From sequence record LR745206.1: 64,000 nucleotides of DNA. The stretch is one strand, 5' to 3'. How positions within the stretch are numbered: position 1 is the first letter of the stretch; each line of letters opens with the position of its first letter. The translations under genes were made by a program, and so were the position numbers. This document shows, piece by piece, positions 1,113-46,336 of this stretch. The notes under the pieces are model-generated. The model was given only the letters and a program-made list of their open reading frames with translations. It ran no database searches and was not told the origin of the DNA.

Positions 1113-3038
1113 TTATTTTGTTTCTATTTCATTTTCTAGATATCTTATAACTACAGCTTTTTTCTCATCATTTATTTTTCTTGAATGACTTATCCAAACT
1201 ATGGCTTCTTTCCAATCACTATCTTTGAAGTCTTTAGAATATCCTTCTTCTTTCAAGAAAGAAAGTATATCTAATCTAGCGTATTCTGCTGACCATTTAA
1301 TTATCATGTTTCTACCTCTTTCGTCAGTTAATTTACCACCATATTTTAGAAGTAATTTAAATGCTCCGATATAGCTTTCACCGATCTCATCTCTACTTGA
1401 CCAACTACCTTTACAAACCCTTCTAAACGGTAAGAAATTGTTGAAGTTTGGATCAAGACCAGCTTTTAAACAGTATTCTAAAGCATCCATATCATGTAAT
1501 ATGTTATTAAATACATCACCAGTTATATCAGACCCATTACTAACAAGTAACTTAATCATCTCTAAGTTTTTAGCTTTTGATATAGGCGCGTCAGCTCCTT
1601 TTTTTAGATTTGGAGATGCCCCTAATTGTAGAATTGTTTTAACTTTCTCATAATCATCTTCTTCAACAGCATTTGTTAAACAAACACCACTATTTTTATT
1701 GATGTTAGCTCCATCTTCTTTTACATATCTAATTATCTCAGCAATTGTTAACCCTTTTCTAACAATTTCTCTTTCAGCTATCTTAGCTCTTTCCCTTCTC
1801 TCAATTTCTTCTCTAGTCATTGGTTTTAATTGAGCCCAAAGATCTTCTTTTATACCATATTCTCTTTGCCAATTACTCAATGTTCTTTGTATTGAACTAG
1901 AAACACCAGCATCATTCTTAGCATGTGCTGCCTTTATCCTTTGACCAGGTTCTATTGTTATACCAATAACTGACATATTATCATATTGTGGTATATTGAA
2001 GTTATAAATGTAATATTGTTTATTATTATGATTTGATACATAGTTTTCCCATTGACTATTATAATCTTTAATACAGTGTCTTGTATGTCCATTTAACATT
2101 TGGTTAGCTGGAAATGATTTAACTTCTATAATTAATACCCCATTTTCATCAAATACTATATCAGCACCAGCATATCCAAATTTTTCATTACAGTTATTTA
2201 TCTTATCATAAAATGCTAATATATCAGAGTTCTCTGATGCTTTTAAGAAGTTTTGTGCTGCTCTAATAAATTCACCAATAGTTGTATAACGTCTTAATTG
2301 ACCAACATATCTTTTTACACCCTCGATAGTTCTAACCTCACCAAAAAAAGATTTCCATAAACCATCTCTCTTTTCCTCATCAATTGTACCATCTTCTTTT
2401 TTACCCATCTCATTAAAGGCTCTAGCAACCTCAGCAAATTGTTCTTTAATACCTTCTGCTGCTCCACTATAATCTCTTTTCAGTTCACTTGTTAATTTAT
2501 CAACAATCTTTTTAACCTTTCTATAATCTTCTAACTTATCAAGACCATCTACTAAAACCTCGGAATTATTTGTGATATTTGGATCAATGAAATGTAAGTC
2601 AAATTTCTTAGGTAAGTGATTTAATAAATCTCTATATTCTACCATATTATTATACATGGATTGTATCTCTTCAATAGTTGTCATTTCAACGTAATACATA
2701 TAAGTGAAATTATACAACCAACCAATATTATCTTTAAGTATTTCTCTTATTTTTAGAAATTCTGGATCTCTTTCGATTTGATGAATTATCTCAGGTGATA
2801 TTTTCATACCCCTGATCATACCTTTTATTTCTTTTACTTGATCTTCGTTAAAATCATTAATAGTTATTGATCTTTTTTCACCATGTTCTAATTGAGCCGC
2901 CAACTCACCTTTGATAAATCCAAGTTCTTCTGCAGCTTTTCTTAATAGGTATCTTTCCTTTAGAAACTTTTTTGATTTATCTAAGTTTTCGTTTAATGGT
3001 TTAATTCCCAAAAAGTGATTATACTTATGTAACTTCAT
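1113..3038 (-). CDS. ankyrin-repeat protein with capsid-targeting-like N-terminus
   Basis: C-terminal repeats GANIN..CLTNAVEEDDYEKVKTILQLGASPN, LEMIKLLVSNGSDI, LEYCLKAGLDPN, FKLLLKYGG; N-terminus MKLHKYNHFLGIKPLNE. Confidence 0.75.
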   Translation of the reverse strand: MKLHKYNHFLGIKPLNENLDKSKKFLKERYLLRKAAEELGFIKGELAAQLEHGEKRSITINDFNEDQVKEIKGMIRGMKISPEIIHQIERDPEFLKIREILKDNIGWLYNFTYMYYVEMTTIEEIQSMYNNMVEYRDLLNHLPKKFDLHFIDPNITNNSEVLVDGLDKLEDYRKVKKIVDKLTSELKRDYSGAAEGIKEQFAEVARAFNEMGKKEDGTIDEEKRDGLWKSFFGEVRTIEGVKRYVGQLRRYTTIGEFIRAAQNFLKASENSDILAFYDKINNCNEKFGYAGADIVFDENGVLIIEVKSFPANQMLNGHTRHCIKDYNSQWENYVSNHNNKQYYIYNFNIPQYDNMSVIGITIEPGQRIKAAHAKNDAGVSSSIQRTLSNWQREYGIKEDLWAQLKPMTREEIERRERAKIAEREIVRKGLTIAEIIRYVKEDGANINKNSGVCLTNAVEEDDYEKVKTILQLGASPNLKKGADAPISKAKNLEMIKLLVSNGSDITGDVFNNILHDMDALEYCLKAGLDPNFNNFLPFRRVCKGSWSSRDEIGESYIGAFKLLLKYGGKLTDERGRNMIIKWSAEYARLDILSFLKEEGYSKDFKDSDWKEAIVWISHSRKINDEKKAVVIRYLENEIETK

Positions 3039-3043
3039 ATAAA

Positions 3044-4558
3044 TTATTTTTCTTTTCTTCCGTGGAATCTATGATTCTCGTTTATTCTTTCTATTTCTTT
3101 AAGGTAAATCTCTTTACCCTCTCCTAAAAATTCACTTAATTCTTTAACCTTGTCGAAATCACCTGCATCAAGTGCATCATCGATTAGACTTTGAATCTCT
3201 CTCTTTGATAATTGAGAATAATCTGATTCTCTTTCCATTGACTTTTGTCTCATTTCATCCTCGAATGAAAGTTCTTTTTCTTTCCCTGGTTCAACTGTAT
3301 CTCCTGATTCATCATCATTATATTCCTCTTCTGGCTCATTATAGTCAGAATTTGGTAAAGCTTCACCCAATTCATACTCATCTAGTGACTTTATTAACCC
3401 TTCAACCATCTCATTAACTTTTGTTCTAGCCTCTGGTGTTTCTAATAATATTTTCTTAACCAATGGTAAAAATTCATCTACTGGTAAAGCATGTAGCATA
3501 CCATAGAAATGCTCTCTTAGATTTGGGTATTTATCTATATCAGGAGCTTCATTAACGAAATCTCTTATATCTGCTGCTAGTTCAGGTCCATATCTAAATT
3601 CTTCTGCCTCATCATCCATTGATGATGTGTTCATCATTACCAACTCAGCAGTTCTTTTATCTTCTGGTATACCTGCCGCTGCTATTAATTCATAAATACC
3701 TTTTACTGTTTCGTGTAATAACATTGGAAAGTCAACACCTCTAGCTTTAATTATTGGATTTCCTGATGATAATAATTCTTGTATATCTTCATCTTCATTA
3801 TCTATATCAGCATCTTCATCTTCAAGTCCTTTTAGAACTTTGTCTGATAAATCCTCTTCTTCTTTAGCATCTGGCCATTTAACTGAACATGCTCCAGCCA
3901 TTCCTTCTGGTGCTTGCTCCATCATATCACCTTTAACATCAACTGGTATTAACCAATCCATTTTATCAGCTAATTCTGTCAACCTCATCCATATTCTATG
4001 TGCTTCTTCACCTTCTCTCTCACCAAGAATAGCTTTTAATTCATTCTTAACCTCAGGCATTGCTAATATCCTTTTTGTATTCTTAGCTTCTCCTTGTGTT
4101 ATATTGTTAATTATCTTTCTCTTATCAACTTCTTTTTTAATCTCTGGATCATTTAATAATTGGAAAGAAGGTGGTTCACAATCTTCACATTCTTCATCCA
4201 TAAAGTCTTTGACTGCTCCTGGTCTAACTATTTTAATATCCAAATCTACATTATCTAATATAGATCCATATTCTTGCATTATTATTCTTTCTGCTAATTC
4301 TTCTAAAGCATCTTCATTTCCTCTTACGAATTGCATAGATTGTTGCATTATCTCCATCATTTCCCTACCAACTTGCATAGTCTGTTGTGGACGACCTCTT
4401 CTAGGATCTTCTTCTCTTGGTACATTAAGTCTTTGTCTAGCTCTACGCTCAACATCACTTAGATATTTCTTCTCATCTCTATCAGAACCTTCACCAGGTA
4501 TACCTGAGCTACCTTTAAGAGATACTTCTTCATTCATAAAATCTTTGAAATTCTTCAT
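3044..4558 (-). CDS. acidic hypothetical protein, putative head-packaged
   Basis: 504-aa ORF starting MKNFKDFMNEE; LLHETVKGIYEL segment. Confidence 0.65.
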   Translation of the reverse strand: MKNFKDFMNEEVSLKGSSGIPGEGSDRDEKKYLSDVERRARQRLNVPREEDPRRGRPQQTMQVGREMMEIMQQSMQFVRGNEDALEELAERIIMQEYGSILDNVDLDIKIVRPGAVKDFMDEECEDCEPPSFQLLNDPEIKKEVDKRKIINNITQGEAKNTKRILAMPEVKNELKAILGEREGEEAHRIWMRLTELADKMDWLIPVDVKGDMMEQAPEGMAGACSVKWPDAKEEEDLSDKVLKGLEDEDADIDNEDEDIQELLSSGNPIIKARGVDFPMLLHETVKGIYELIAAAGIPEDKRTAELVMMNTSSMDDEAEEFRYGPELAADIRDFVNEAPDIDKYPNLREHFYGMLHALPVDEFLPLVKKILLETPEARTKVNEMVEGLIKSLDEYELGEALPNSDYNEPEEEYNDDESGDTVEPGKEKELSFEDEMRQKSMERESDYSQLSKREIQSLIDDALDAGDFDKVKELSEFLGEGKEIYLKEIERINENHRFHGRKEK

Positions 4559-4812
4559 TATTTATTGACATATTTTTTTATGTCTTCACCCTTATCATTA
4601 AGGAGACTTATGAATCTATCAACAACATCCTCAACGGTTGCCTTTGGTGCTGGATTTACTGATGGTTTATCTCTTCTTATTGGTGAAGGTCTACCAGGTC
4701 TTGTTCCTGGTTTCACACCAGGTGTTGTAGTAGGAGCTGGTTTAGTTTCAACTTCTTGACCACCCATCACAAATTCCTCATTGAATTTTTCAAACTTTTT
4801 TAGAAATCTCAT
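4558..4812 (-). CDS. Pro-rich small protein, putative head-packaged
   Basis: MRFLKKFEKFNEE start; late motif TTAATATATA on minus strand at 4837-4846. Confidence 0.7.
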   Translation of the reverse strand: MRFLKKFEKFNEEFVMGGQEVETKPAPTTTPGVKPGTRPGRPSPIRRDKPSVNPAPKATVEDVVDRFISLLNDKGEDIKKYVNK

Positions 4813-4836
4813 AAGATTAGTTATTTTTATATGATT

Positions 4837-4903
4837 TATATATTAAAATTATAATTCTATTTTTGTGATTATCTTAATTTATTACAATTGAATTTAATAT
4901 ATA
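4837..4903. promoter_or_regulatory. divergent pair of putative late promoters
   Basis: TTAATATATA on minus strand (4837-4846) and on plus strand (4894-4903), each just upstream of a start codon. Confidence 0.6.
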
Positions 4904-4908
4904 TCTAA

Positions 4909-5988
4909 ATGAAGTATATTAAACCATATAGTAATTTTTCTATAAATGAAGCGGTTGGTCTAGCTGAGGCTACACTCATCTATTCTGAATTTATACTAGA
5001 TAAAACAAAATTTTACTTTGATAAGTTTCTTAAAATTGGAGATAGAAAGTTCGAACAAAATAAATCTTATGATCTTTCAAAAAGAAATGATATCATTCTT
5101 AATGATTTGTGGGATAAATATCCTGTTTTGAAAATGAATATTACTTTTAATTTTGAAAAGCAAAGTGATGTTGATTTTAATGAAAGATTCCCAAAAACTT
5201 CTAAAATAAAGGGATTCACAACAACAGGAGCTTGCTATAATATAGTTGAGAATAGATCAAGAGATAAATCTTATCTATTACCAAATATAAACAAAAGAAC
5301 AAAGCATACAATTTTTTTAAAATTAGAAGTTGGTGGGATTATACGTGATAGTTTTGATGAAAACGAGGATTTCCTATTAGAAGTTGAGGGCGCTATAATA
5401 CATGAGTTAAATCATGCTTATGAGGGTTATATGAGGTTGATTAAAGGAAGTGGTCAAGTATCAACTGATTTAACATTCGCAACAGATAATAATCGAAGTA
5501 AAGTGAAGAATGAGATATGGAAAGTATGGAGGGATAAAATAGGATACTATCTATATACTAGTGAGAGACATGAGTTAAATGCCATGGCACAAGAAGCATT
5601 TCCTTATGTTAAGAAATATGATCCATCTGAGATGAGGAAAAAATGTCCATCTTGGAGAACCGCAGAAGAAATGTCTAAATTTAATGTTGTTGATTTTAAA
5701 AAAGAAATCACAAAAATGATAAATAAATATTACTCAGGTGTCTATCCAGAATTTATAGTTAGCATACTTAATAGACTAAAGAATGGGTTGGGTAATGAAT
5801 TAGGTGTTAATAGAGAAGAATCGGTTGATATGTTAGAAGATTCCCCTTCTTTGAATGGGCAAGAAATATATAATATGGATATAGATAGGTTTTTGTTATA
5901 TGTTCAAAAAAGGGTTAATAAGGCTGGTGATAATCTTAAAAAGAAAATAAATAGACTATACTCTATAAAAGATAAGGATTTAAAATGA
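4909..5988 (+). CDS. putative zinc metallopeptidase (HExxH), putative head-packaged
   Basis: IIHELNHAYE plus downstream ERHELNA; N-terminus MKYIKPYSNFSINE. Confidence 0.55.
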   Translation: MKYIKPYSNFSINEAVGLAEATLIYSEFILDKTKFYFDKFLKIGDRKFEQNKSYDLSKRNDIILNDLWDKYPVLKMNITFNFEKQSDVDFNERFPKTSKIKGFTTTGACYNIVENRSRDKSYLLPNINKRTKHTIFLKLEVGGIIRDSFDENEDFLLEVEGAIIHELNHAYEGYMRLIKGSGQVSTDLTFATDNNRSKVKNEIWKVWRDKIGYYLYTSERHELNAMAQEAFPYVKKYDPSEMRKKCPSWRTAEEMSKFNVVDFKKEITKMINKYYSGVYPEFIVSILNRLKNGLGNELGVNREESVDMLEDSPSLNGQEIYNMDIDRFLLYVQKRVNKAGDNLKKKINRLYSIKDKDLK

Positions 5989-6383
5989 GAAAATTTACTA
6001 AAATACTTGAAGAAATAGAAAATGGTAAATTCTATAAAGTTAATGCTGAGATAGAATTAATAATACCTGCTGATAATGAAGGTGAGGCTGGTTATTTATC
6101 TGACTCGATACTATCATCACTAGAGAATGGATCAAATTATCAAATTATCAATATTGATGAAACTGATGAAAGAATAACTGAGCACATGGAACTTTATAAA
6201 GGTAAACAAGGTCCTTTTCAAGAAGATAAAAAAACTCCAGAAGAAACTATTGAATTAACTTGGGAGGCTGAGTTCGGTGATAGTTTGCCTACTATGGATC
6301 AGAGAATGGAATTCTATCATGATATGAGAAAGGCTGGATATGATAGTCAATTGGTATTCAAAACCCTAAAAGGTAAATTTTGA
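5985..6383 (+). CDS. hypothetical protein, putative head-packaged
   Basis: MRKFTKILEE start; ATGA overlap with upstream stop. Confidence 0.65.
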   Translation: MRKFTKILEEIENGKFYKVNAEIELIIPADNEGEAGYLSDSILSSLENGSNYQIINIDETDERITEHMELYKGKQGPFQEDKKTPEETIELTWEAEFGDSLPTMDQRMEFYHDMRKAGYDSQLVFKTLKGKF

Positions 6384-6420
6384 TATTAATATATAATTAA
6401 GACAAAAACAAATTAAATAA

Positions 6421-6996
6421 ATGAAGAAGTTTTCAGATTTTGGTGGTAAAAAACCAGTTAAAAGAATAAATGAGGCTGATGAAACAGTAGATTTTCAACC
6501 TGTTTCGGGTCAAGATGGTGCTCCTGTTGTAGCTAACCTACCAGGAAATATACAAATGCCTGGTGAGGAACAAGAAGAAAAGGAACAAGAAGGAGAAATT
6601 GCTGGTACTGTTGAATCTACTGAATGTTCAAATTTCTTTTCTAAATTATTCGAAAGTAGAGAGATGGCTCATGTTTATCACTTACAAGTTAGGGGTGATG
6701 AAGGTTCTTATGCAAAACATATGGCTCTTGGTGGTTATTATGAAGGGGTTCTAGATTTTATTGATGAGATAATAGAAGTTTATCAAGGACAATATGGTAT
6801 CATTGATGGTTATGATATAATCGATACGAAAGATACTAAAACAAAAGATCCAGTTGCTTATTTTGAGGAGATGGCTGAATATATTAAAAATGCTAGAAAA
6901 TGTATTAATGAAGAAGATACACATTTACATAACATAGTTGATGAGATAGTAGCTCTTATTTATAAGACACTTTATAAATTAAAATTTAACAAATAA
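6421..6996 (+). CDS. ferritin/Dps-like four-helix protein (DUF5856-like)
   Basis: AHVYHLQ..SYAKHMALGGYYEGVLDFIDEIIEVYQGQYG pattern; late motif at 6386-6395. Confidence 0.6.
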   Translation: MKKFSDFGGKKPVKRINEADETVDFQPVSGQDGAPVVANLPGNIQMPGEEQEEKEQEGEIAGTVESTECSNFFSKLFESREMAHVYHLQVRGDEGSYAKHMALGGYYEGVLDFIDEIIEVYQGQYGIIDGYDIIDTKDTKTKDPVAYFEEMAEYIKNARKCINEEDTHLHNIVDEIVALIYKTLYKLKFNK

Positions 6997-7388: not shown

Positions 7389-7706
7389 TTATTTGTTTTC
7401 AGTGTATAAGTATTTTCTACCTTCATCATTATAATCCATTAAGTTATTTATGATAGTATCCGCTTTATCAATAGTATCATCTAAATTTTTCTTTATAACT
7501 TGTAAAGCAGCGATAGAATCATCTATTTGATCATTACCTTTTTTTGAATTATTCTTATAGTTATTTAATTCATTTATATATGATTCAGCCATCTTACTTT
7601 TATCTTCTATTGTGGAAGAGAAATCTCTTAGATCTTCAATTATTTCACCAACTCTTTCAGTAGAAATATTATTCTCATCATTTTCATATAGTCTTTTAAT
7701 TTTCAT
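7389..7706 (-). CDS. coiled-coil small protein, putative head-packaged
   Basis: MKIKRLYE start; heptad-rich. Confidence 0.65.
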   Translation of the reverse strand: MKIKRLYENDENNISTERVGEIIEDLRDFSSTIEDKSKMAESYINELNNYKNNSKKGNDQIDDSIAALQVIKKNLDDTIDKADTIINNLMDYNDEGRKYLYTENK

Positions 7707-7727: not shown

Positions 7728-7743
7728 TTAATATATATATTAA
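7728..7743. promoter_or_regulatory. palindromic bidirectional late promoter
   Basis: perfect 16-bp palindrome TTAATATATATATTAA holding TTAATATATA on both strands between divergent starts 7706 and 7747. Confidence 0.6.
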
Positions 7744-7746: not shown

Positions 7747-8424
7747 ATGAAAAGGAAGAATAAGCTAATTTTAGAATTCACGGAATTTAATCTACAAAGG
7801 TTTAATAGTGATTCAGTTGTTCCAGCAGCACCAAATGTTAATAATCCATCTTTATCAACAGATGGTATTAATAGACATGAAGATGGTATTAGACAAGCGA
7901 TGTCTAGAATTAATGATATTCTTTATAATTTAAAGGGTACAAATTCATATTCTCAATTGAGAAGTAAGTTAGCCCTAGAGGACCAGGATATACAAAGTCT
8001 TAAAATACTAAGAATGGTTAAATCAAATGTTAGTTATGATGTTTATTTAACATTAGTGGTTGATGGTGAGACATATTGGGGTAAAATTATTAACATAACT
8101 GGTATGGATCCTAAATTCGAATCAGAAATGTTTAAGGATTTTGATCTATATCAACCAAAAGAATGGGTTATTAAAATGAAAGGTCTTGTTATTAAGACTA
8201 TTAAGGCTTGGTTAAAACCTAAACCAGGTAATTATCAGTTATTGAATGATGAAGTTATATGTTATTCTGTTGATACTGGTAAACAATTAAGAATGGAAAA
8301 AGGTATTGAAGTTGAATTAATACGTTCTCATGATGATAAAATAATTGTTAAACATGAAGGTGAATATTATAATTTAGTTGGTGATAACTTTGTCTATTTC
8401 AATTGGTGGTTTGAATTAGTTTAA
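7747..8424 (+). CDS. hypothetical protein
   Basis: 225-aa ORF; N-terminus LILEFTEF resembles the targeting motif. Confidence 0.65.
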   Translation: MKRKNKLILEFTEFNLQRFNSDSVVPAAPNVNNPSLSTDGINRHEDGIRQAMSRINDILYNLKGTNSYSQLRSKLALEDQDIQSLKILRMVKSNVSYDVYLTLVVDGETYWGKIINITGMDPKFESEMFKDFDLYQPKEWVIKMKGLVIKTIKAWLKPKPGNYQLLNDEVICYSVDTGKQLRMEKGIEVELIRSHDDKIIVKHEGEYYNLVGDNFVYFNWWFELV

Positions 8425-15471: not shown

Positions 15472-15486
15472 TTTAATATATATCTT

Positions 15487-17897: not shown

Positions 17898-18055
17898 TGG
17901 ATAAAAGTTGGATAAAAATATCAATTAATAGCTACTACGGTACTTATAATTCTGGTAAATCAAACTTTGATATGAAACCACTTTGGGTTAAATATCGTAG
18001 TGGTAAAAGGAAGTCAAAGATAAAAAATATATGGAAGATAGATGGGATGTTATAA
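17897..18055 (+). CDS. 52-aa tagged micro-protein with PolB motif-B-like segment, not in ORF track
   Basis: MDKSWIKISINSYYGTYNSGKSNFDMKPLWVKYRSGKRKSKIKNIWKIDGML; TAATG coupling. Confidence 0.6.
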   Translation: MDKSWIKISINSYYGTYNSGKSNFDMKPLWVKYRSGKRKSKIKNIWKIDGML

Positions 18056-29188: not shown

Positions 29189-29404
29189 TTAAATACGAGC
29201 GTTATCAATAATATCGCTCGTTTTGATTATTTCATCTGGTGCATTAAAAATTTTAGATTGAGATATGTTATGTGTTATTTTAAAAGATCTATTTGATACT
29301 TTCTCAAGTATCTTAACTGGTGTAATCATGTCATTATACCAATATTCGATTAATACAATATCTCCTTCTTTATAAAACGATTTATACTCATTTAAAAATT
29401 TCAT
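29189..29404 (-). CDS. small SH3-like protein
   Basis: YKEGDIVLIEY..VKILEK; start MKFLNEYKSF. Confidence 0.55.
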   Translation of the reverse strand: MKFLNEYKSFYKEGDIVLIEYWYNDMITPVKILEKVSNRSFKITHNISQSKIFNAPDEIIKTSDIIDNARI

Positions 29405-37274: not shown

Positions 37275-37302
37275 TTTGATTTTATAAATTAATATATAGA
37301 CT

Positions 37303-37713
37303 ATGATTAAAAAGTATTTACAATTCATAAAAGAAGCTGATGAGGTTGAGGAAATAACTGATACTGAAACTAAAGATGATAACTCTGATATATCTCATGA
37401 TTCTAAATTTACCGAAATTAAAGATGAGGTTAAATTAATGATAGAGAATACAATAGAGAAAAGTGGTGGTGAATTTGAATCATTTGTTGATTCCTTTATT
37501 AAAAATCCAGAAGATGTTAAGGTCGAGGGATTCATAAACGACTCGGATATATATGATTTCTATTTAAAATGGAGAAATGATATTGATGAGGTTTTAAATG
37601 ATGTTAAGTTTTTTGATGAAGTGCCAACTGAGATGAATGCTTTTGGTTTATACGAATATGTTATAAAAGGAACTGAAAAAGCTTTTAGTGAAATAGTTAA
37701 AACAATCGGTTAA
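37303..37713 (+). CDS. acidic protein, putative head-packaged
   Basis: MIKKYLQFIKE start; late motif 37289-37298. Confidence 0.7.
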   Translation: MIKKYLQFIKEADEVEEITDTETKDDNSDISHDSKFTEIKDEVKLMIENTIEKSGGEFESFVDSFIKNPEDVKVEGFINDSDIYDFYLKWRNDIDEVLNDVKFFDEVPTEMNAFGLYEYVIKGTEKAFSEIVKTIG

Positions 37714-38229: not shown

Positions 38230-40923
38230 ATGGCATCTACCCCACTTTTTAAATCACTTAAACCGAATGGTACATCATTTTATGCTTTTCCTGGTGCGGC
38301 AGAGGATATTTCAGCGGCATATCAGAATTCAAATTATAAAATGTATTTTTCTAAATATGTTTTGATGAATTTACCAAAGCAAAATACAACATTAGGAACA
38401 CAATCAAATCCGATATATTTTGATTTTGAGAATTCGTTTGAAAACTCAGTAAATGCTACACCTGCTTTTAACTATTCTGATGCTATTATAGAATCATTAA
38501 GGAGTTATGTGGCTAACCAAGAAGTTGTTATTAGAGAGAGTAGATTGAATAATACTAAATATTATTACGATACAAATGCTTTAGAAACAACATCTGAAAA
38601 GATATTTTTTAAATGGTGTAAGAAATTAAATATTCTTGATTTCGAACCAGCTATTCCAGAGGATGAATATTTTAGTAATTTACAAGATTTTCAATCAAAT
38701 AATATAAATGATGATGAGTATTTCCCTGAATTTTTATGGAAGGAAAGAGAAGTATCTCCTTGGAACACAAGAATATTTTATGAGACTGCATCTGGTGATC
38801 CATCTCTAATTGGTAAATTAGAGGTTGAATTTGGAGGAACTACAAACTTTAGAGTTGGTGATATTGTTAATATTTATAATGTTAGTAATTCTACAATATA
38901 TACTGACCCATTTCTTGTTGGTTCAGAAACCGAAGATGGGATAAACACAACTATACTTTCTATTATACCATCAGGAGCTACTCAAGGTCAAAGAATTATA
39001 TTTGATATTGATACAAATCTTGGTGCTACAAATGAATTAGATGGGAAAGCTAAATTAGTTTATCATAAATTGATACAATATATTGGTGAGGTAAATGGTA
39101 TTAGTAATGTACAAGAGGCTAATAGATCTTATACCGAAGTTTTTGCTAATATACCAGACCATACAGGACAAACACCTGACATTCTTTTTAGAACATTGGT
39201 TGATGTTAATTATAAACCAAATTTAACATTCCCTATTTTACCTAGTCAATATCAACCAGAGATATTAGGAGCTGAATTGTTTAATTCTCCGATAGTTAGT
39301 ACTCCACAAAATTATCCAGGTTCTTATTTTGGACAATTTGATACACTTGACTTTACATATGTAACCGAAACTGGAGATGATATAAGAAGGAGTGGTGATT
39401 ATTATGGTGTTAATGGTGATATAAATAATCCAGTTGTTGATGGATCTACTATTGATGGTATTACATTAGACTTTAATACAAGTCACTATGTTAAGATGAA
39501 TATACCAAATAGAGTTGTTACTAATTTTGATCAATTTAATGCACTTGAAGTTAATAATGAACCACCTAAAGATTTTGAATACAATGCTATATTATGGTAT
39601 TATACAGTTGAGGATTCTGCTGGTGATTCAAGAACAAATTTATATGGTATTTCATTTCTAGATCACCCTGATAATAATCTAAAAGATGAAGAGGTTAGTT
39701 TGAGGTTCCCTACAATTAAAAAATTGGTTGCTAATGGTGAGCAGGATGGTACATCTTATTCATATAATTTGAATCTTAATTTTAATATAATAAATGAAAA
39801 TACAATTGATGCTTATAATCCGGAAGCTATAAATTCATTATTTAGTATGAACTTATTTAATGATGCTATGAAAAGATTATCATCCACAAATGATAGCTTT
39901 ATCAATATATTAGCTGAGCATTCAGAAATAACTGATGAGATTAATAATATTAGAGGGTTGGTATATACCCAAACAGATATAAGTGTATTGACTGCTAAGA
40001 TTAAAAGTCTTGAAGATTTATTGAGATTATACTCAACTAATCAAATGCAATCAAGTGATACTATTACTGTTAATCAAATACCTGGTAATCCACCAATACT
40101 CACACTAAATAGTATTGATACTCAATATTCTAGAGTTGATAATTACAAATCTACTGATTTATATAATGCTCAAGGTATAATTCCAATAAATGTATCTATT
40201 CCACAGAATAAAAACTTCTTTATCAATTTTATTAATAATGATGAAGTTGAACTTGATTTAGGTAATGATAGATTAACACTTATTTTAGATAGAGATTTAT
40301 ATTATAAGCAGTCTGTTGATGTTTTAATTACTGCTAGTGAATTTTCATCTGAGAATAAGAAATTAGATATTTATATGTCAAGTGATATTGGATCGGTTGA
40401 TGGTTCTACAACAGAAGTTTTAGTAATCGGTGATATTGATTTACCTGTTTACTACAACACATCTTCTCAATTACCAAACTCAGCAGCTGTTTGGAAAGAC
40501 TTTAAATTTGATATTGATTTTGATCAATCACTTAGTTTGATAACTGGTGATAGGATAGAAGTTCCATTTGTTGGAAATACATCAATTATAAGTAATTCGA
40601 TTAAGGTTGGTGATACATTACATATGAATAACTTTTTTGTTGGTACTAGCTCTATATATGATTTCTCTGGTCAATATAAAGTTGATTCTGTTGCTGGTGG
40701 TACTAGTTCTTATGTAACTTTTGATATTAGTACGAATGATGATTTGGTAGCCTATGGAGCATCGACTTCATTACCATTAGAAATACATGGTACATCATCA
40801 ACACTTTTATCAAACATACCATATTTTTCATTAAATAAAGGTAAAAAAATTAGAATTACTAGAGGTAGTAATTCGGATATACTAAACGAGAGATATATTG
40901 TAGAGGTTGACGATATTATATAA
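38230..40923 (+). CDS. 897-aa putative virion structural (baseplate/tail) protein
   Basis: large beta-rich ORF in a structural block. Confidence 0.55.
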   Translation: MASTPLFKSLKPNGTSFYAFPGAAEDISAAYQNSNYKMYFSKYVLMNLPKQNTTLGTQSNPIYFDFENSFENSVNATPAFNYSDAIIESLRSYVANQEVVIRESRLNNTKYYYDTNALETTSEKIFFKWCKKLNILDFEPAIPEDEYFSNLQDFQSNNINDDEYFPEFLWKEREVSPWNTRIFYETASGDPSLIGKLEVEFGGTTNFRVGDIVNIYNVSNSTIYTDPFLVGSETEDGINTTILSIIPSGATQGQRIIFDIDTNLGATNELDGKAKLVYHKLIQYIGEVNGISNVQEANRSYTEVFANIPDHTGQTPDILFRTLVDVNYKPNLTFPILPSQYQPEILGAELFNSPIVSTPQNYPGSYFGQFDTLDFTYVTETGDDIRRSGDYYGVNGDINNPVVDGSTIDGITLDFNTSHYVKMNIPNRVVTNFDQFNALEVNNEPPKDFEYNAILWYYTVEDSAGDSRTNLYGISFLDHPDNNLKDEEVSLRFPTIKKLVANGEQDGTSYSYNLNLNFNIINENTIDAYNPEAINSLFSMNLFNDAMKRLSSTNDSFINILAEHSEITDEINNIRGLVYTQTDISVLTAKIKSLEDLLRLYSTNQMQSSDTITVNQIPGNPPILTLNSIDTQYSRVDNYKSTDLYNAQGIIPINVSIPQNKNFFINFINNDEVELDLGNDRLTLILDRDLYYKQSVDVLITASEFSSENKKLDIYMSSDIGSVDGSTTEVLVIGDIDLPVYYNTSSQLPNSAAVWKDFKFDIDFDQSLSLITGDRIEVPFVGNTSIISNSIKVGDTLHMNNFFVGTSSIYDFSGQYKVDSVAGGTSSYVTFDISTNDDLVAYGASTSLPLEIHGTSSTLLSNIPYFSLNKGKKIRITRGSNSDILNERYIVEVDDII

Positions 40924-40965: not shown

Positions 40966-42123
40966 ATGTCAGTTTGTGGACAATCATTATTCGGAAGTGG
41001 TAGTAATTACATAAAAGTAGCGAATGGATCTTTTTTAGCTATAGAAGGATCTACGATAGCTGAATCATTATTATTATCTGATTTGAGAATGCCTTATAAG
41101 CAATTATTAAAGGGTAGAATAATATTAAAAGCTGGTCAAGAAGATTTTCTATTAAATCATCTAGGTTTAGGTGATAATGCAACATTTTTAGCTATTAAAG
41201 TAACTTATAATCCAAAATCTGTAATTGAAGAGGATAATTATATACAGTGGTCTTTTTATGATGATGTTGAGAGAGTTAATACAATAGCTCAATTATTGGT
41301 ATTAACTGGTAATTCATCTAATAGAATACCTCAACTTTGGCTAACAAATCCAAATAGTAAATATCCAGTAACACTAGATGTTATGGTTGCTGTAATTGAT
41401 GATAATACATTCTTTGAATATAGACCAGTTGTTTATTTTACTGCTCCGGTTACATTAGAAAATGCTGTTTATTCAGGTCCTTATAATACTTCACTTGGTA
41501 CTAATTTTGGTATAACCATACCAAGTATTAATAACTTTGTTGGATATGATATTAATGATTTGAGAACAGAGATTGTCGATCATGTTGTTGAGTCAAATGG
41601 TTTATTATTGAGTACAACTGCTAGTAATTATTTACTTTATGATATTGATAGTAATCCAATTAATTCATTTACACTATCTGGCACATATTCTATGTTATTT
41701 GATATAACAGATTCATTGAATAATTCAATTGATCCAGCTGATAATGTTGAAATAATATACAATGCAACATACACACCGGTTGTTTTCTTTACTCCTGATG
41801 TTTATTTGATAGGTTCTACTGCATCACCAGTTAATACATTATTAGGTGATACATTTGGTGCAACAATATCATTAACTATGTCAGTTTATGGTGGTACTGT
41901 TAGTGTGTTGGATTTAGCTGGTGTTTTAGTTGACCATGTTGAAGAAGCTAATGGTGTTACTTTCTCAGCTACAGCTAGTAATTATATATTATACGATTAT
42001 TCAAATCTAGTTATTAATGGTATAACAATATCGGGTACTTATTCATTAGGATTTAATATAACAGATTCATTTGGTACACTTGATCCGAATAAAATAGTAG
42101 GCGTGTCATTCACAGGAGTATGA
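40966..42123 (+). CDS. putative structural protein with duplicated C-terminal domain
   Basis: two copies of PVV.FT..VDHV.E.NG..TASNY.LYD..SGTYS..F.ITDS; late motif 40934-40943. Confidence 0.6.
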   Translation: MSVCGQSLFGSGSNYIKVANGSFLAIEGSTIAESLLLSDLRMPYKQLLKGRIILKAGQEDFLLNHLGLGDNATFLAIKVTYNPKSVIEEDNYIQWSFYDDVERVNTIAQLLVLTGNSSNRIPQLWLTNPNSKYPVTLDVMVAVIDDNTFFEYRPVVYFTAPVTLENAVYSGPYNTSLGTNFGITIPSINNFVGYDINDLRTEIVDHVVESNGLLLSTTASNYLLYDIDSNPINSFTLSGTYSMLFDITDSLNNSIDPADNVEIIYNATYTPVVFFTPDVYLIGSTASPVNTLLGDTFGATISLTMSVYGGTVSVLDLAGVLVDHVEEANGVTFSATASNYILYDYSNLVINGITISGTYSLGFNITDSFGTLDPNKIVGVSFTGV

Positions 42124-43082
42124 TAATTAAAAAGTATATAAAATTTATTAAAGAAAATTTAATGCAATTTAATTCATTAGGTGAATGGGTTGACTCATTA
42201 TCTGATGATGATTATGTTATGAATATTGTTAATAGATATTTGAAAGATATTGATCCGGATATTGAATTGGAAAATGCGGTAAATCTTTTGGATGATAATG
42301 AACAAGCTGATATTAGATCACAGATATCTGAATATTTAGAAAAAGGTATTCAGGAAAAAGATCCAAATGTATTAGCATCCACTGAAACTGATATATTAGA
42401 AAATGTTCAAGAAATAACTGTTGCTGGTAAAGGAGTATTTAACTCTTTTCTTAAATCACTAACTGCCCTTGGTCAAAAAGAATCTAAGCCAAATTATGAT
42501 AGATGTCCAGAAGATTTTTTAGTATTTTATCACTATCAAAATCTAAATTCTAATGATGTTAAGGTTGTTTTTAGTAGATTTAAATCACTTTTGAGATATT
42601 CTGATATGATTGATTATGGTAAGAATGAAGTTAGTCTTTATTTTGGTATTAAATGTGATGGTCAGTTTGAATATGGTATATCTTATGATAGTTTATCACC
42701 AATGGGTCAATTTAAATTATCACAATCATCTATTAAGTGGTTAGTTCAATTGGAATCTAAATCATCTAGATCACTTAAAAAGGAATTGGTTAACTTAACA
42801 TACAATGATATATTATTATTTGGTAAGATTAAAATGGATATGAAGGATTTTAATCCTGGTTATCATGAGAAGAGATCTTATCCTACTATAACTGATAGAG
42901 TTATCTCATTTGGGTATTATGGTGTTGGTAGATGGGATAATGGTAAATTGGATGAGGGTGAATATATGAATATTAAAAATAATTTTACTACTTGGATTCT
43001 TACTAAGAAATGGGGAAGTAAAGTTTTGATAAGTGTTAAGCCTCAATCATTTTGGTTATACATACATATAAAATTGAAATAA
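42120..43082 (+). CDS. hypothetical protein, putative head-packaged
   Basis: MIIKKYIKFIKEN start. Confidence 0.65.
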   Translation: MIIKKYIKFIKENLMQFNSLGEWVDSLSDDDYVMNIVNRYLKDIDPDIELENAVNLLDDNEQADIRSQISEYLEKGIQEKDPNVLASTETDILENVQEITVAGKGVFNSFLKSLTALGQKESKPNYDRCPEDFLVFYHYQNLNSNDVKVVFSRFKSLLRYSDMIDYGKNEVSLYFGIKCDGQFEYGISYDSLSPMGQFKLSQSSIKWLVQLESKSSRSLKKELVNLTYNDILLFGKIKMDMKDFNPGYHEKRSYPTITDRVISFGYYGVGRWDNGKLDEGEYMNIKNNFTTWILTKKWGSKVLISVKPQSFWLYIHIKLK

Positions 43083-43083: not shown

Positions 43084-43374
43084 ATGAAATATTTAAGAAA
43101 ATATAATGAATCAAATGGAGAGCAAGATTTAGATTTTGTTTTAGCTAAGATTAAGGAAGAATTTCCTATTGATAAGGTTAAAGAAACTTATGATAAAGAA
43201 GTTGATGAGTGGTCAGAAGATTACACTAATAGTGGTAATGGTGAGGCACAAGACGTTATCTTAAATCAAATGATTGGATGGTTCGAGTTGAAACATTCTA
43301 GCCTTAGTGATGAGTTATTTGAAGAAGTTTATAATAAACTACAAGAGGAATATGAATTCCTAAACATTGATTAA
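43084..43374 (+). CDS. acidic small protein, putative head-packaged
   Basis: MKYLRKYNES start. Confidence 0.65.
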   Translation: MKYLRKYNESNGEQDLDFVLAKIKEEFPIDKVKETYDKEVDEWSEDYTNSGNGEAQDVILNQMIGWFELKHSSLSDELFEEVYNKLQEEYEFLNID

Positions 43375-43406: not shown

Positions 43407-43880
43407 ATGACTCAAAGTTCTAAAGAAGATATTTTTAAAAAATGGGCACCTATTATAGAATCTATGGGTGTTACTGGATCAAAAGCAGATTGGATGTCTC
43501 ATTATGCTGAAATGCACTCTATCAATGAGAATAATATACAAATATCATCAACACAATCTACTTCTAATTTTCCAAATTTGTTACCAATCGCTAAAAAGAT
43601 TGCAGCTCAAACAGTTGGACTAAATTTAGTAGCTGTTAAACCAATTGGTGGTAATTCAACTGATGAGTTAGAAAGAATAAAAAGTGAGATTAAATCTGAA
43701 AACCGCGATAGAAAAATCGATTCTATTACAGATGATAAAGAATTTGAGGAAATGAAGGTTGAGGATCATCCAGACTATGAAACTGGTTTACCTAGTGGTA
43801 AATTATTTTACATGGATTATCAATATGGATCTACACCAACACATAAGAAGACAAGAAGAAGTAAAAAGAAGAAGAAATGA
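43407..43880 (+). CDS. major capsid N-terminal-like fragment with internal tag
   Basis: MTQSSKEDIFKKWAPIIE versus T4 gp23 MTIKTKAELLNKWKPLLE; LVAVKPIGG..PSGKLFYMDYQYG; NRDRKIDSI inserted. Confidence 0.75.
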   Translation: MTQSSKEDIFKKWAPIIESMGVTGSKADWMSHYAEMHSINENNIQISSTQSTSNFPNLLPIAKKIAAQTVGLNLVAVKPIGGNSTDELERIKSEIKSENRDRKIDSITDDKEFEEMKVEDHPDYETGLPSGKLFYMDYQYGSTPTHKKTRRSKKKKK

Positions 43881-44529: not shown

Positions 44530-44802
44530 ATGGGATCAATGAAAGAAATTAGTATTAGAGAATATATTTCTAATATAGACTTCAAACGAGATGATTGGAA
44601 ACTTTCAGTTATGAAAGAAGATATGAGAAAATTCTTAGGTGAAGAACCAGGTATCGATATCATTTACAAAAAAGATGTAATGATAAACGAAACAACACAA
44701 GAAGCTCAAGAATATGTTGATATCAATAAAGTTCAAATAGTTTTTTTTGATACTGATGAAAAATTTAAGAAACTAGAGTTTCTGATAGATGATAATGTTT
44801 AA
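44530..44802 (+). CDS. hypothetical protein
   Basis: 90-aa ORF in operon. Confidence 0.6.
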   Translation: MGSMKEISIREYISNIDFKRDDWKLSVMKEDMRKFLGEEPGIDIIYKKDVMINETTQEAQEYVDINKVQIVFFDTDEKFKKLEFLIDDNV

Positions 44803-45016
44803 AATGGACTTAAAAAATTACTACCTAGATCTTAAAAAAGTTTCTGAATTGGAATTAGAAGAAGATAGAAAAATTATACATGACTATTATAGGGATATGT
44901 TGAGTTATAATTATGAAAAAAGAGAAGAAATCGCAATTTCTATGTTTAATACACTATATAGTGGTGACTATTTAAAAGAAGTTCGTGATGAAAAAATTGA
45001 TCAAATACTTTCTTAA
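44789..45016 (+). CDS. tagged hypothetical protein
   Basis: ends VRDEKIDQILS; start may be a few codons later. Confidence 0.65.
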   Translation: MIMFKMDLKNYYLDLKKVSELELEEDRKIIHDYYRDMLSYNYEKREEIAISMFNTLYSGDYLKEVRDEKIDQILS

Positions 45017-45333: not shown

Positions 45334-45663
45334 TTCATTAAGTTTAATATTTCGATTAACCATTTTAAATTCATCAATCAAATCTCCCCAATATTTAAAC
45401 TTAATTCTATACTTACAACTCTTACCTAATTTAATATTAGACCAAGATTTTCCATCAGTTTTAAAATCCTTACTTATTGGAAATTGATATAAGTACATAA
45501 ACCAATAATTTCTATCTCTACTTTTTAAGAAATCTTTATTGTCTTTCAGATGATATGTATAATAAGCTTTTATAGCTTCATCATAATAATCACATATATA
45601 GTGTATTTCTGGCAATCCTTGTCCTCTTTGACAGGACATAATATAAATAAATTTCTCTTCCAT
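45322..45663 (-). CDS. tagged hypothetical protein
   Basis: ends VNRNIKLNELID. Confidence 0.65.
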   Translation of the reverse strand: MEEKFIYIMSCQRGQGLPEIHYICDYYDEAIKAYYTYHLKDNKDFLKSRDRNYWFMYLYQFPISKDFKTDGKSWSNIKLGKSCKYRIKFKYWGDLIDEFKMVNRNIKLNELID

Positions 45664-45697
45664 ATAGATTTTTATTAAAAAAGAGTATAAAGTTGTA

Positions 45698-46336
45698 TTA
45701 GATATTGATAAATCTCAATGTCATACCAAAAGCCTCTTCTTCATCAAAAGAAATAGACTCATTTTTTAGATTTAACTGGTCTTTTATCCTTGCACATAGT
45801 GGAGTTAATTCATCACTTAGAACACCTAATGATTCTACATTTAGTTGATTATCCGAACCTAATCTAACAAATATATAATTTGAATTTTCATAAACTTCAT
45901 AGAATTCAATATTATCTAAAGTTGAGACAGCTATTAACTCAACATCTTTAGATATCTGTGATATCTTTGGATACCCAATCATTTCACCATCTGTTTCAAA
46001 CTCATCTCTTATTTGGTTGTAAAAATCAATAGATTTAGATATAATTACTGATTTATCACCATAACTCTTTCTTCGTAATTTACTTTCCCAATTACTACCA
46101 ACCCAACTAGGATCATCATTAAATTCTTTTTTATACCAAGTGTATATTTCTTTTGATATTTTATCATATCTCCATTCAGTATATTTTAATATACCTCCCA
46201 TAATATCTTTAAAAATATCTGATGATATCAAATCATTTATTTCTTTTTCTCCCATGAAATCACCAACTTTATCTTTTATTTCGGATAATTGTTCATCAGT
46301 ATAAGATTCTAGAAATTTAACCCACTTTTTAATCAT
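45698..46336 (-). CDS. hypothetical protein, putative head-packaged
   Basis: likely start MIKKWVKFLES at 46336, directly after late motif 46341-46350. Confidence 0.7.
   Translation of the reverse strand: MIKKWVKFLESYTDEQLSEIKDKVGDFMGEKEINDLISSDIFKDIMGGILKYTEWRYDKISKEIYTWYKKEFNDDPSWVGSNWESKLRRKSYGDKSVIISKSIDFYNQIRDEFETDGEMIGYPKISQISKDVELIAVSTLDNIEFYEVYENSNYIFVRLGSDNQLNVESLGVLSDELTPLCARIKDQLNLKNESISFDEEEAFGMTLRFINI

Follow-up and report, generated by a model that had tools for sequence, protein, structure and literature searches.

A short N-terminal leader resembling the capsid-targeting tag of phage T4 on about one gene in six of an uncultured megaphage

Why should many apparently unrelated proteins of one megaphage begin with nearly the same short peptide, and could this peptide direct them into the capsid? 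The question arose from a window of 64,000 nucleotides corresponding to positions 248001-312000 of LR745206.1 (634,780 bp, uncultured megaphage). An earlier note on this window had described about 17 ORFs sharing a start similar to the peptide that phage T4 uses to load internal proteins, mostly associated with an upstream motif and never with a C-terminal R-x-x-K-I tag. It proposed that the phage packs and injects many proteins, including enzymes, and uses two separate peptide address systems.

To determine whether the shared start exceeds what the genome composition would produce, we first performed a motif search without a template on all 918 genes. A leader of the form MK[YH]LKx[FY](N/E)E, ...YK[IL]FE or M..KKYx[QE]FIxE was found at residue 2 in about 140-180 genes (about 146 in the set used below), against 0.2-0.4% of control peptides. 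Strict patterns for three leader types gave 44 genes against 0 controls (type A), 18 against 1 (type B) and 21 against 4 (type C), the controls being 2847 peptides starting at internal Met residues. The pattern described in the earlier note, written as a regular expression, hit 30 of 918 N-termini genome-wide against 1 of 2847 controls. We next trained a PSSM only on genes outside the window; 8 of 75 window genes scored at least 8 bits and 10 of 75 at least 6 bits, whereas internal-Met control peptides reached those scores at 0.2% and 0.9%, respectively. The observation made in the earlier note is thus confirmed, and the set of carriers is larger than it described. Within the window, nine members are robust, two are borderline, and seven of the examples given in the note score low, although for five of these seven (1113, 3044, 5985, 6421 and 20303) the LR756502.1 orthologue keeps the same aromatic...[MILV]-x-E pattern. 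The features are as follows, with bit scores from this PSSM unless stated otherwise and a slash marking the end of the leader where the boundary is given.

4558-4812 (-): robust leader gene, 84 aa, starting MRFLKKFEKFNEE; 10.2 bits; exact TTAATATATA at 4837-4846(-); the LR756502.1 orthologue starts MKFIKKFEKFLES.
4909-5988 (+): robust leader gene, 359 aa, MKYIKPYSNFSINE/A; 12.1 bits; TTAATATATA at 4894-4903; the orthologue starts MGIINFKNFQLNE/K; no Pfam family.
7389-7706 (-): robust leader gene, 105 aa, starting MKIKRLYENDE; 9.9 bits; TTAATATATA at 7734-7743(-), overlapping the divergent site at 7728-7737(+).
7747-8424 (+): borderline leader gene, 225 aa, starting MKRKNKLILEFTEF; 8.3 bits, but only at offset 1; TTAATATATA at 7728-7737; no orthologue found in the LR756502.1 piece.
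15487-16326 (+): robust leader gene (type C pattern), 279 aa, MNILNWQLFLEE/F; 7.6 bits and a match to the type C regular expression; TTAATATATA at 15473-15482; methyltransferase-like, with a Methyltransf_12/25 match from residue 48 near the Pfam threshold.
25423-26772 (-): robust leader gene (type C, T4-like), 449 aa, MRLKKYLEFIKE/S; 12.4 bits and a match to the type C regular expression; the start is the first ATG of the ORF, and the upstream in-frame codons read ...FFYIYN, the translation of a TATATATA-type motif; no Pfam family.
29189-29404 (-): borderline leader gene, 71 aa, MKFLNEYKSFYKE; 7.1 bits; the orthologue starts MKFLLEYKSFYNV, so the Glu is not conserved.
37303-37713 (+): robust leader gene (type C), 136 aa, MIKKYLQFIKE/ADE; 12.5 bits; TTAATATATA at 37289-37298; orthologues start MIKKYLQYIKE/ADE and MIKRYSQFIKE/ADE.
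42120-43082 (+): robust leader gene (type C), 320 aa, MIIKKYIKFIKE/N; 14.1 bits; in the unit headed by TTAATATATA at 40934; five orthologues keep KKY[IL]xFI[KS]E/S, with different lengths before the KK.
43084-43374 (+): robust leader gene (type A), 96 aa, MKYLRKYNE/S; 15.8 bits, the best in the window; orthologues start MKYLRRYNE/D, MRYLRKYNE/N and MKYLRKFNE/N.
45698-46336 (-): robust leader gene, 212 aa, MIKKWVKFLE/S; 7.7 bits; TTAATATATA at 46341-46350(-) ends 4 nt before the ATG; the longer TTG-started ORF overlaps the next gene by about 350 nt.
1113-6996: four weak variants named in the note, scoring -2.8 to 1.9 bits, namely 1113-3038(-) MKLHKYNHFLG..LNE, 3044-4558(-) MKNFKDFMNEE, 5985-6383(+) MRKFTKILEE and 6421-6996(+) MKKFSDF..INE; their LR756502.1 orthologues read MGIFKYNQFIG..LTE, MKNFSKFLEE, MKKFTKLLEE and ..FKKFSDI..INE, keeping the aromatic...[MIL]-x-E pattern; Pfam gives Ank_2 below threshold for 1113 and DUF5856 for 6421.
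20303-25437 (+): three more weak or doubtful members, namely 20303-20785 MISKFSDMVNE, 24326-24895 MEKFSKLKPKDE (NUDIX, 32.6 bits) and 24892-25437 MIKTFESFNK, scoring -3.9, 3.0 and 2.6 bits, respectively; the 20303 orthologue starts MIKFSNMINE; 24892 reaches 9.0 bits on the iterated HMM; TTAATATATA lies at 20289 and 24296.
43407-43880 (+): neighbour without the leader, a 157-aa protein whose first ~88 residues copy the N-terminal propeptide region of the capsid protein, followed by a basic tail (..KKTRRSKKKKK); BLASTP against the phage's Gp23-family capsid protein gives 41% identity, E = 7e-22; conserved in five relatives.

The enzyme assignments proposed in the note were only partly recovered. 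The methyltransferase (15487) lies near the Pfam threshold, NUDIX (24326) was confirmed but on a protein with a weak leader, ankyrin (1113) fell below threshold, 6421 matched DUF5856 without evidence of a ferritin-like fold, and neither HAD nor the HExxH peptidase was recovered by Pfam.

To establish whether selection acts on the peptide or on the underlying DNA, we compared synonymous codons inside the leader with those of the whole genome. Usage was equal (e.g., Lys AAA/AAG 62/21 against 60.9/22.1 expected), and Leu was spread over four codons, so selection acts on the peptide. The leader is also modular, as most carriers are unrelated to each other beyond residue 12: with the N-terminus removed, 142 carriers fall into 138 BLAST clusters, and even at E < 0.01 only 31 of 146 have another carrier as a partner. 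In orthologues, leader sequence and length vary, but the leader always ends at Glu just before the conserved domain. For example, the NFACT-R gene next to the capsid gene starts MKYLKYFE/SKK.., MRNLSTFKRFLNE/GKK.. or MIKKFNSFNE/SKK.., and window genes behave in the same way. Furthermore, the leader is found on 7.7% of 1810 ORFs in 81 related loci against 0.25% of controls, and an exact degenerate DNA pattern finds at least 120 IMG/VR stretches, with 86 of 90 matches starting ORFs; the leader persists across a widespread IMG/VR clade.

We then examined the genomic context of the leader genes. The window contains 18 exact TTAATATATA sites, all just upstream of gene starts, and genome-wide 112 of 133 sites lie within 80 nt upstream of a start, 50 of those preceding leader genes. 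This motif lies upstream of 32% of leader genes against 7% of non-leader genes (OR 6.4, p = 2e-14). The exact motif also precedes the portal gene, and close variants precede the protease, capsid and sheath genes, suggesting a late promoter, an inference that rests on which genes it precedes rather than on transcript data. Conversely, the host-type TATATTTG lies upstream of 1 of 146 leader genes against 65 of 774 others. The exclusivity of the leader and the C-terminal R-x-x-K-I tag described in the earlier note holds almost without exception: the window has 9 leader genes, 13 tagged genes and 0 with both, and genome-wide there are 146 and 181, with 2 carrying both against 28.8 expected (p = 6e-13). 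The tag is a real peptide-level motif, but it marks small, tightly packed genes that almost never follow the late-like motif (2% against 44% for leader genes). The mutual exclusivity therefore follows expression class, and since nothing links the tag to the capsid, the proposal of two address systems is unsupported for the C-terminal tag.

If the leader works as in T4, the phage should possess the corresponding head machinery, and we thus searched the genome for it. A T4-type portal (Portal_T4, E = 2.7e-57) and a Gp23-family major capsid protein (E = 1.8e-26) were found. Directly upstream of the capsid gene lies a 707-aa protein in which a gp21-like protease domain appears fused to a coiled-coil, acidic scaffold. 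It matches Peptidase_S77 only weakly, below the Pfam cut-off, and aligns to T4 gp21 at 28% identity over 107 aa, with GEFDHP/GELNHP and VSSRAAG/VSSRGLG aligned. hhalign gave a probability of 76% (E = 2.4e-5), and the top three Foldseek hits were T4 gp21 (5jbl, E = 1.6e-5), followed by herpesvirus proteases. Each of these lines is individually weak, as the AF2 model has a pLDDT of 50 and PDB sequence searches missed gp21. The scaffold part is rich in [LI]-x-E sites (4.7 per 100 aa against 1.4 proteome-wide) and carries eleven aromatic-x-x-aromatic-[ILV]-x-E units (YSEY[LI]AE) at a strict 14-residue period, against 89 such units in the whole 193,932-aa proteome. Their number is 10-13 in 76 orthologues, and they score 3-9 bits on the leader-core model, resembling both the leader and T4's MKTYQEFIAE.

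The comparison with T4 itself holds. IpII and IpIII in the T4 record both start MKTYQEFIAE/A, and this peptide scores 10.4 bits on a model built only from the type C leaders of this phage, a score reached by only 3.7e-5 of internal windows. However, the type C pattern was written with T4's peptide in view, so that this match is partly post hoc, and the dominant types A and B resemble the T4 tag only in general pattern, the T4 peptide scoring -2.3 bits on that model. Leaders end [LIV]-F-E, I-x-E or [FY]-N-E (the latter for type A, rather than [LI]-x-E), with Ser the commonest next residue. T4-type proteases cut C-terminal to Glu (PMC5694885), and in an alignment with T4 gp23, residues 63-65 of the T4 protein read L-T-E, at the end of its 65-residue propeptide (PMC5694885).

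The identity of the carriers was also considered. Identifiable non-cargo proteins have no leader: the portal, capsid, sheath and tube proteins and the large structural ORFs lack it, and length-matched untagged controls are rich in housekeeping enzymes, with 99 Pfam families against 34 for leader proteins. Annotated carriers are of the RNA-repair or counter-defence type (Rnl1-like RNA ligase, a 2',5'-ligase/Acb1-like domain plus exonuclease, DHH, NUDIX and methyltransferase), a cargo-like content; T-even internal proteins are described as diverse defence proteins sharing only a CTS (PMC3012670).

Taken together, the best reading is that the leader is a T4-type capsid-targeting propeptide cut after Glu, to which we assign a probability of about 0.55. 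In this view, the phage would make, late in infection, about 150 mostly unrelated, mostly acidic proteins, each beginning with a 9-12-residue amphipathic peptide of the form basic - aromatic - x - x(x) - aromatic - (hydrophobic) - x - Glu. This peptide would dock the protein into the scaffolding core of the prohead, built from the gp21-like protease fused to the scaffold, whose eleven 14-residue repeats have the same aromatic-x-x-aromatic-[LI]-x-Glu pattern, so that the leader would probably co-assemble as one extra repeat. Once the shell closes, the protease would cut scaffold and leaders after the Glu, usually before Ser, and the mature cargo would stay in the head with the DNA and could enter the host with it. 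The analysis itself demonstrates the motif, its conservation at the peptide level, its modularity, its tie to the late-like motif, the T4-type head genes and the leader-like scaffold repeats, whereas docking, cleavage, packaging and ejection are inferred from sequence alone, without proteomic or experimental evidence that any of these proteins is in a virion or is cleaved. The interpretation offered in the earlier note is thus partly supported. Two further points weigh against this reading: about 150 cargo species would be several-fold more than in any studied phage, and these proteins are mostly acidic (81% net negative), whereas T4's internal proteins are basic.

The rival that survives best, although doubtful, is that the leader is a handle for a different late process, such as docking to another assembly (tail, baseplate or an intracellular compartment), chaperone recognition, or timed activation or destruction by the phage protease. 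Indeed, the sequence data show only a conserved, modular, late-associated N-terminal peptide and not its destination, and the number and acidity of the carriers differ from known T4 cargo. However, the only partner found in the genome with a matching pattern is the head scaffold, the leader ends in the kind of site that T4-type head proteases cut, recognisable tail proteins lack it, and type C closely matches T4's capsid tag.

It is unlikely that the pattern is a by-product of translation start requirements on near-leaderless, AU-rich late mRNAs. The consensus residues K, Y, L, F, N and I are those with AU-only codons, and in 41 of the 67 leader genes that have the late-like motif it starts at -14/-15, so that the transcript probably begins at or near the AUG. 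Nevertheless, synonymous codons occur at genome-wide frequencies, with TAC over-used at position 3, and the pattern is position-specific and includes His (CAT) and Glu (GAA/GAG). Substitutions are chemically conservative (Y/H/F, L/I, K/R), 44% of leader genes lie within 10 nt of an upstream same-strand gene, orthologues tolerate insertions and deletions but keep the Glu boundary, and off-frame ATG-started peptides match at only 0.4%.

Equally unlikely is that the carriers form one large, fast-evolving paralogous family in which only the N-terminus stayed recognisable, the shared start then reflecting descent rather than a portable address. Leader genes do cluster in tandem (56 adjacent pairs against 23 expected), and small families exist, for example leader plus linker plus ..DIxDxFLELKDDGF, with at least 13 members in three BLAST groups. 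However, at E < 0.01, 105 of 146 carriers have no partner at all, carriers hold unrelated Pfam domains (RNA ligase, DHH, NFACT-R, NUDIX, methyltransferase and M15 peptidase), sizes range from about 46 to 1284 aa, and some families mix members with and without the leader. Finally, chance in a 29% G+C genome whose proteome is rich in I, K, L, N, Y and F is refuted by internal-Met and off-frame controls from the same genome, which match at 0.2-0.4% against 11-16% of true N-termini, with strict patterns 16- to 136-fold enriched.

Among known systems, the closest is the capsid targeting sequence (CTS) of T4 IpII/IpIII (Mullaney & Black 1996, as cited in PMC9958956, PMC5694885 and PMC3012670). Both consist of a short N-terminal peptide shared by otherwise unrelated proteins, with an aromatic-x-x-aromatic-Ile-x-Glu core (YQEFIAE in T4, Yx[QE]FIxE in type C) ending at a Glu of the kind the head protease cuts, in phages with gp20-, gp21- and gp23-type head genes, and the putative cargo here looks like counter-defence enzymes. 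The differences are about 146 carriers (16% of genes) instead of a handful, commonest forms (MK[YH]LKx[FY]NE and ..YK[IL]FE) that are not T4's sequence, and the acidity of the carriers. The T4 prohead core, with gp21 protease and gp22 scaffold, is comparable in the predicted gp21 fold and motifs of the protease domain, the scaffold that follows it and the position of the gene directly upstream of a gp23-type capsid gene, but here protease and scaffold are fused and the scaffold carries the regular repeat array. The giant phages phiKZ, 201phi2-1 and SPN3US (PMC5694885, PMC10052503) load many proteins, including propeptide-bearing ejection and inner-body proteins, into the head and process them with a gp21-related protease that cuts after Glu. 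However, their propeptides are mostly longer than 100 residues and cut at (S/A/G)-x-E, only about 8-19 proteins are processed, and they have no shared 10-residue leader and no confirmed gp22-type scaffold (PMC5694885). The Dar proteins of phage P1 (PMC9024508) are packaged anti-restriction proteins, enzymes loaded into the head and delivered with the DNA to counter host defences, but their loading depends on an ordered protein-protein hierarchy and not on a common cleavable N-terminal tag. With about one gene in six starting with a peptide resembling the T4 tag, and with T4-type head machinery encoded in the same genome, this megaphage may pack and inject an unusually large protein cargo.

To analyze the motif across a whole genome rather than on the 17 or so examples of the earlier note, we retrieved the complete LR745206.1 record (634,780 bp, unannotated, deposited as "uncultured phage"), in which the window occupies positions 248001-312000. 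This phage is one of the >630-kb megaphages of Al-Shayeb et al., none of which has been cultured (PMC9723777). Calling ATG-started ORFs with a simple greedy rule under the standard code yielded 918 ORFs covering 94% of the genome. The features discussed below, other than the leader genes themselves, are the following, with positions counted in the window unless LR745206.1 is named:

7728-7743: two overlapping TTAATATATA sites on opposite strands, between the divergent leader genes 7389-7706(-) and 7747-8424(+)
15473-15489, 20289-20305, 37289-37305, 46336-46350(-) and 62029-62043(-): examples of TTAATATATA close to a start codon
8716-13328 (-), 31524-37274 (+), 38230-40923 (+) and 50700-58472 (-): three adjacent ORFs of 500-525 aa and several very large ORFs (897, 987, 1591 and 1916 aa)
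18031-18363, 19939-20292, 44789-45016, 48085-48384 and 59294-59524: examples of the 13 genes in the window with the C-terminal tag
43407-43880 (+): a 157-aa protein resembling the N-terminal propeptide region of the capsid protein
46395-48092 (+): an SbcC-like nuclease subunit (phrog_77, E = 1.3e-71), next to the leader gene at 45698-46336
LR745206.1 130568-131992 (-), outside the window: a 474-aa ORF with a partial DNA_pol_B match
LR745206.1 198546-200669 (+), outside the window: the gp21-like prohead protease fused to a scaffold
LR745206.1 37041-37391(-), 596245-596655(-), 616321-616683(+) and 457944-458342(-): examples of a small multigene family carrying the leader

Position-specific residue frequencies at all N-termini already revealed Y/H at residue 3, L at 4, K at 5, F/Y at 7, F at 10 and E at 11. 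An EM motif search with no template, performed without the initial Met since a first run locked onto it, returned K-[YH]-[LI]-K-x-[FY]-[ENK]-E-[FS]-E anchored at residue 2, the motif spanning residues 2-12. A PSSM trained only on genes outside the window scored 8 of 75 window genes and 134 of 843 others at >=8 bits, a level reached by only 0.2% of in-frame internal-Met peptides and 0.4% of off-frame ATG peptides. A second round of EM on the remaining genes degenerated into a composition model, and an iterated HMM narrowed to two subtypes (A and B) and missed the third (C), so strict patterns were used to define the subtypes. Against 2847 control peptides, type A (MK[YH]LKx[FY]xE) was found in 44 genes versus 0 controls, type B (..[FY]x[ILV][FY]E) in 18 versus 1, and type C (M..KKYx[QE]FIxE) in 21 versus 4, while the pattern of the earlier note, once formalized, gave 30 versus 1. 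The union set holds 146 genes (16%), which is probably an undercount because several true starts lie downstream of the first ATG. In the window, 9-11 of the roughly 17 members listed by the earlier note are robust and the others are looser variants, five of which keep their pattern in the LR756502.1 orthologue. The observation made in the earlier note is therefore real.

To determine whether selection acts on the peptide or on the nucleotide sequence, we next examined codon usage inside the leader. Synonymous codons occur at genome-wide frequencies, Leu is spread over four codons, and substitutions are conservative at the protein level (Y/H/F, L/I, K/R). Selection therefore acts on the peptide.

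We then asked whether the carriers share more than their N-terminus. Once the N-terminus was removed, 142 carriers fell into 138 BLAST clusters, and in an all-against-all BLASTP at E < 0.01 only 31 of 146 had another carrier as a partner, while 105 of 146 had no partner at all. A few small families exist, notably one consisting of a leader, an 8-12-residue linker and ..DIxDxFLELKDDGF, with at least 13 members in three BLAST groups, often in tandem arrays. Carriers hold unrelated domains, including a T4 Rnl1-like RNA ligase, a 2',5'-ligase/Acb1-like domain plus exonuclease, DHH, NFACT-R, NUDIX, methyltransferase and M15 peptidase. In this respect the leader fits the description of a T4-type capsid targeting sequence or head-protease propeptide, a short (about 10-20 aa) N-terminal peptide shared by otherwise unrelated proteins. 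In contrast, allowing start offsets 2-3 in the PSSM produced hits to a DNA_pol_B fragment, a RecA-like protein, RlaP and a PKD/CHU_C protein with a signal peptide, which upon inspection were model false positives, and the reading that replication enzymes carry the leader was rejected. The 474-aa ORF at LR745206.1 130568-131992 (-) matches only the middle of the DNA_pol_B profile (positions 138-237 of 453, from its residue 15), suggesting a split or interrupted family B polymerase gene. A Sec or lipoprotein signal peptide was also considered, but the leaders lack a hydrophobic core of about 10 or more residues after a basic N-terminus. Read directly from the sequences, they alternate Lys, aromatic and acidic residues and run into acidic stretches, and true signal-peptide-like starts such as MKLSKKILSFLFITFLSF appeared only among the PSSM false positives. 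Leader proteins are poorly annotated, with 34 Pfam families in 141 proteins compared to 99 in 141 length-matched untagged proteins, a set full of housekeeping enzymes, and they are also more acidic (81% net negative versus 64%). A PHROGs search gave no match for the three adjacent 500- to 525-aa ORFs and the very large ORFs of the window, most of which sit behind the late-like motif described below and are probably virion proteins.

The leader is also conserved in relatives. In 81 related loci, comprising 80 IMG/VR contigs with 69-80% identical capsid proteins and a piece of LR756502.1, it was found on 7.7% of 1810 ORFs versus 0.25% of controls. Fifty-eight homologues of the NFACT-R gene located beside the capsid gene were found in related loci, and those that share its domain have leaders that differ in sequence and length but end at Glu immediately before the conserved KKxKFPNI. 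Orthologues of window genes 37303, 42120 and 43084 behave the same way. A single-protein locus search for 42120 returned only 4 loci. Furthermore, a degenerate DNA pattern for type A found at least 120 stretches in IMG/VR, many on contigs over 100 kb, and 86 of 90 matches examined start ORFs.

To investigate the expression class of the leader genes, we analyzed their upstream regions. Of 133 exact TTAATATATA sites, 112 lie within 80 nt upstream of a start on the same strand, and 50 of those precede leader genes. The motif lies upstream of 32% of leader genes versus 7% of non-leader genes (OR 6.4, p = 2e-14), and looser variants give 44%, compared to 22% for untagged genes and 2% for genes with the C-terminal tag. 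The exact motif precedes the portal gene, with close variants before the protease-scaffold, capsid and sheath genes, and we thus read it as a late-promoter-like element, an inference that rests on motif association only. It most often starts 14-15 nt before the ATG and ends 4-5 nt before it, whereas a second class sits 27-39 nt upstream. If the motif is a -10-type late promoter, many late mRNAs would be leaderless or nearly so. The two sites at 7728-7743 overlap as a palindrome (TTAATATATATTAA-like). Conversely, the host-type element TATATTTG, a Bacteroidota-type promoter element in our reading of TAnnTTTG, lies upstream of about 8-10% of C-tagged and untagged genes but of only 1 of 146 leader genes, versus 65 of 774 others (p = 1.7e-4).

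We next searched the genome for T4-type head machinery. Pfam identified a Portal_T4 portal (194.9 bits, cut-off 22.9, E = 2.7e-57) and a Gp23-family capsid protein (93.9 bits, cut-off 24.4, E = 1.8e-26), in agreement with phmmer searches using T4 gp20 (4.9e-23) and gp23 (6.2e-6). The 707-aa protein directly upstream of the capsid gene begins with a gp21-like domain, taken as residues 1 to about 190. It matches Peptidase_S77 at E = 0.005, below the Pfam cut-off, and aligns to T4 gp21 by BLASTP (E = 2e-4) with 28% identity over 107 residues, the His and Ser motifs being aligned (GEFDHP/GELNHP and VSSRAAG/VSSRGLG). hhalign gave a probability of 76%. PDB sequence searches with the protease domain did not find gp21, but a fold search did: the top three PDB matches of a low-confidence model (pLDDT 50) are T4 gp21 (5jbl), followed by herpesvirus proteases. 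The rest of the protein is coiled-coil and acidic and carries eleven units of [NSTA]YSEY[LI]AE at a strict 14-residue period. The pattern aromatic-x-x-aromatic-[ILV]-x-E occurs 11 times in this protein and 89 times in the whole 193,932-residue proteome, and the count is 10-13 in 76 orthologues, the architecture being conserved in 76 related contigs. In the window, the first ~88 residues of the protein at 43407-43880 (+) are a paralogue of the N-terminal propeptide region of the capsid protein (41% identity, E = 7e-22), followed by a very basic tail. This protein is conserved in relatives and could represent a second route into the head, by mimicking the scaffold-binding end of the capsid protein.

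The leaders were then compared with the capsid targeting sequence (CTS) of T4, whose IpII and IpIII both start MKTYQEFIAE|A in the T4 record. On a model built from the 21 type C cores of this phage, TYQEFIAE scored 10.4 bits, a level reached by 3.7e-5 of internal windows, although the type C pattern was defined with the T4 peptide in view. The scaffold repeats scored 3-9 bits on the same model. Types A and B (62 or more genes) do not resemble the T4 peptide, which scores -2.3 bits on their model. At the sequence level only, leaders end in a putative head-protease site of the hydrophobic-x-Glu kind, with P3-P1 residues [LIV]-F-E, I-x-E (I[KNT]E) or [FY]-N-E, usually before Ser, and this boundary is conserved in orthologues. 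T4-type proteases cut after Glu (PMC5694885), and T4 gp23 reads L-T-E at residues 63-65, the end of its 65-residue propeptide. Reviews describe the T-even internal proteins as diverse defence proteins sharing only a CTS (PMC3012670) and call the docking mechanism mysterious (PMC9958956).

The most likely mechanism, to which we assign a probability of about 0.55, is that the leader docks late-made cargo into the scaffold core, plausibly as an extra copy of the scaffold's own repeat, after which the fused protease would trim scaffold and leaders after Glu and the cargo would stay in the head. Only the sequence-level parts of this model are established by our analysis, whereas docking, cleavage, packaging and injection, as well as the late timing of expression, are inferred, and the sheer number of carriers is a reason for caution. 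The interpretation given in the earlier note is thus partly supported. Among the alternatives, another late destination for the same handle is less likely but survives best. A by-product of AU-rich, near-leaderless mRNAs is improbable: in 41 of the 67 leader genes that have the late-like motif, it starts 14-15 nt before the ATG, but codon data, operon-internal carriers and orthologues that tolerate insertions and deletions argue against this reading. A single diverged paralogous family is equally improbable, and chance is excluded.

A de novo search also recovered the C-terminal tag, [IL]-R-[DEN]-x-K-[IL]-x-x-[IL]-[LG], within two residues of the C-terminus in most carriers. It is present on 181 of 918 genes (20%) versus 0.3% of controls, again with normal codon usage, indicating conservation at the peptide level, and it is also found in relatives. 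Only 2 genes carry both motifs, compared to 28.8 expected (p = 6e-13), with none in the window and none among 1810 ORFs in related loci. Tagged genes are small (median 107 aa) and tightly packed (median gap -1 nt), and they follow the late-like motif in only 2% of cases. An 8-mer search upstream of these genes found no specific motif. The mutual exclusivity pointed out in the earlier note is therefore real, but it follows expression class, and nothing shows the tag to be an address as the note had proposed.

The CTS mechanism itself is known. However, literature searches on this accession, on capsid targeting in huge phages and on the T4 tag sequence turned up no prior description, and a genome-wide cohort of this size, its own consensus and the leader-like repeat array on a protease-scaffold fusion were not found in the literature that could be searched. 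In a bolder reading, which remains tentative and rather unlikely on present evidence, a widespread clade of megaphages over 600 kb would load more than 100 different proteins into the head through a leader that mimics one repeat of the scaffold's own coiled coil. Cargo capacity would then be set by a repeat array on a protease-scaffold fusion, giving these phages a payload comparable in complexity to that of giant eukaryotic viruses, and this would also suggest how the T4 CTS finds the core.

The resemblance between leader and scaffold repeat offers a concrete, testable model for how T4-type targeting sequences dock into the core. Together with the separate C-terminal tag, two short peptide motifs split 36% of the genome into two classes, sharing only 2 genes, that follow inferred expression timing. 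If the leader is a capsid address, it would provide a simple sequence rule to predict cargo across a widespread uncultured clade, and about one gene in six of the largest known phages would encode virion cargo, which would change how their "dark" ORFans are read: as injected first-strike proteins rather than unknown metabolism.
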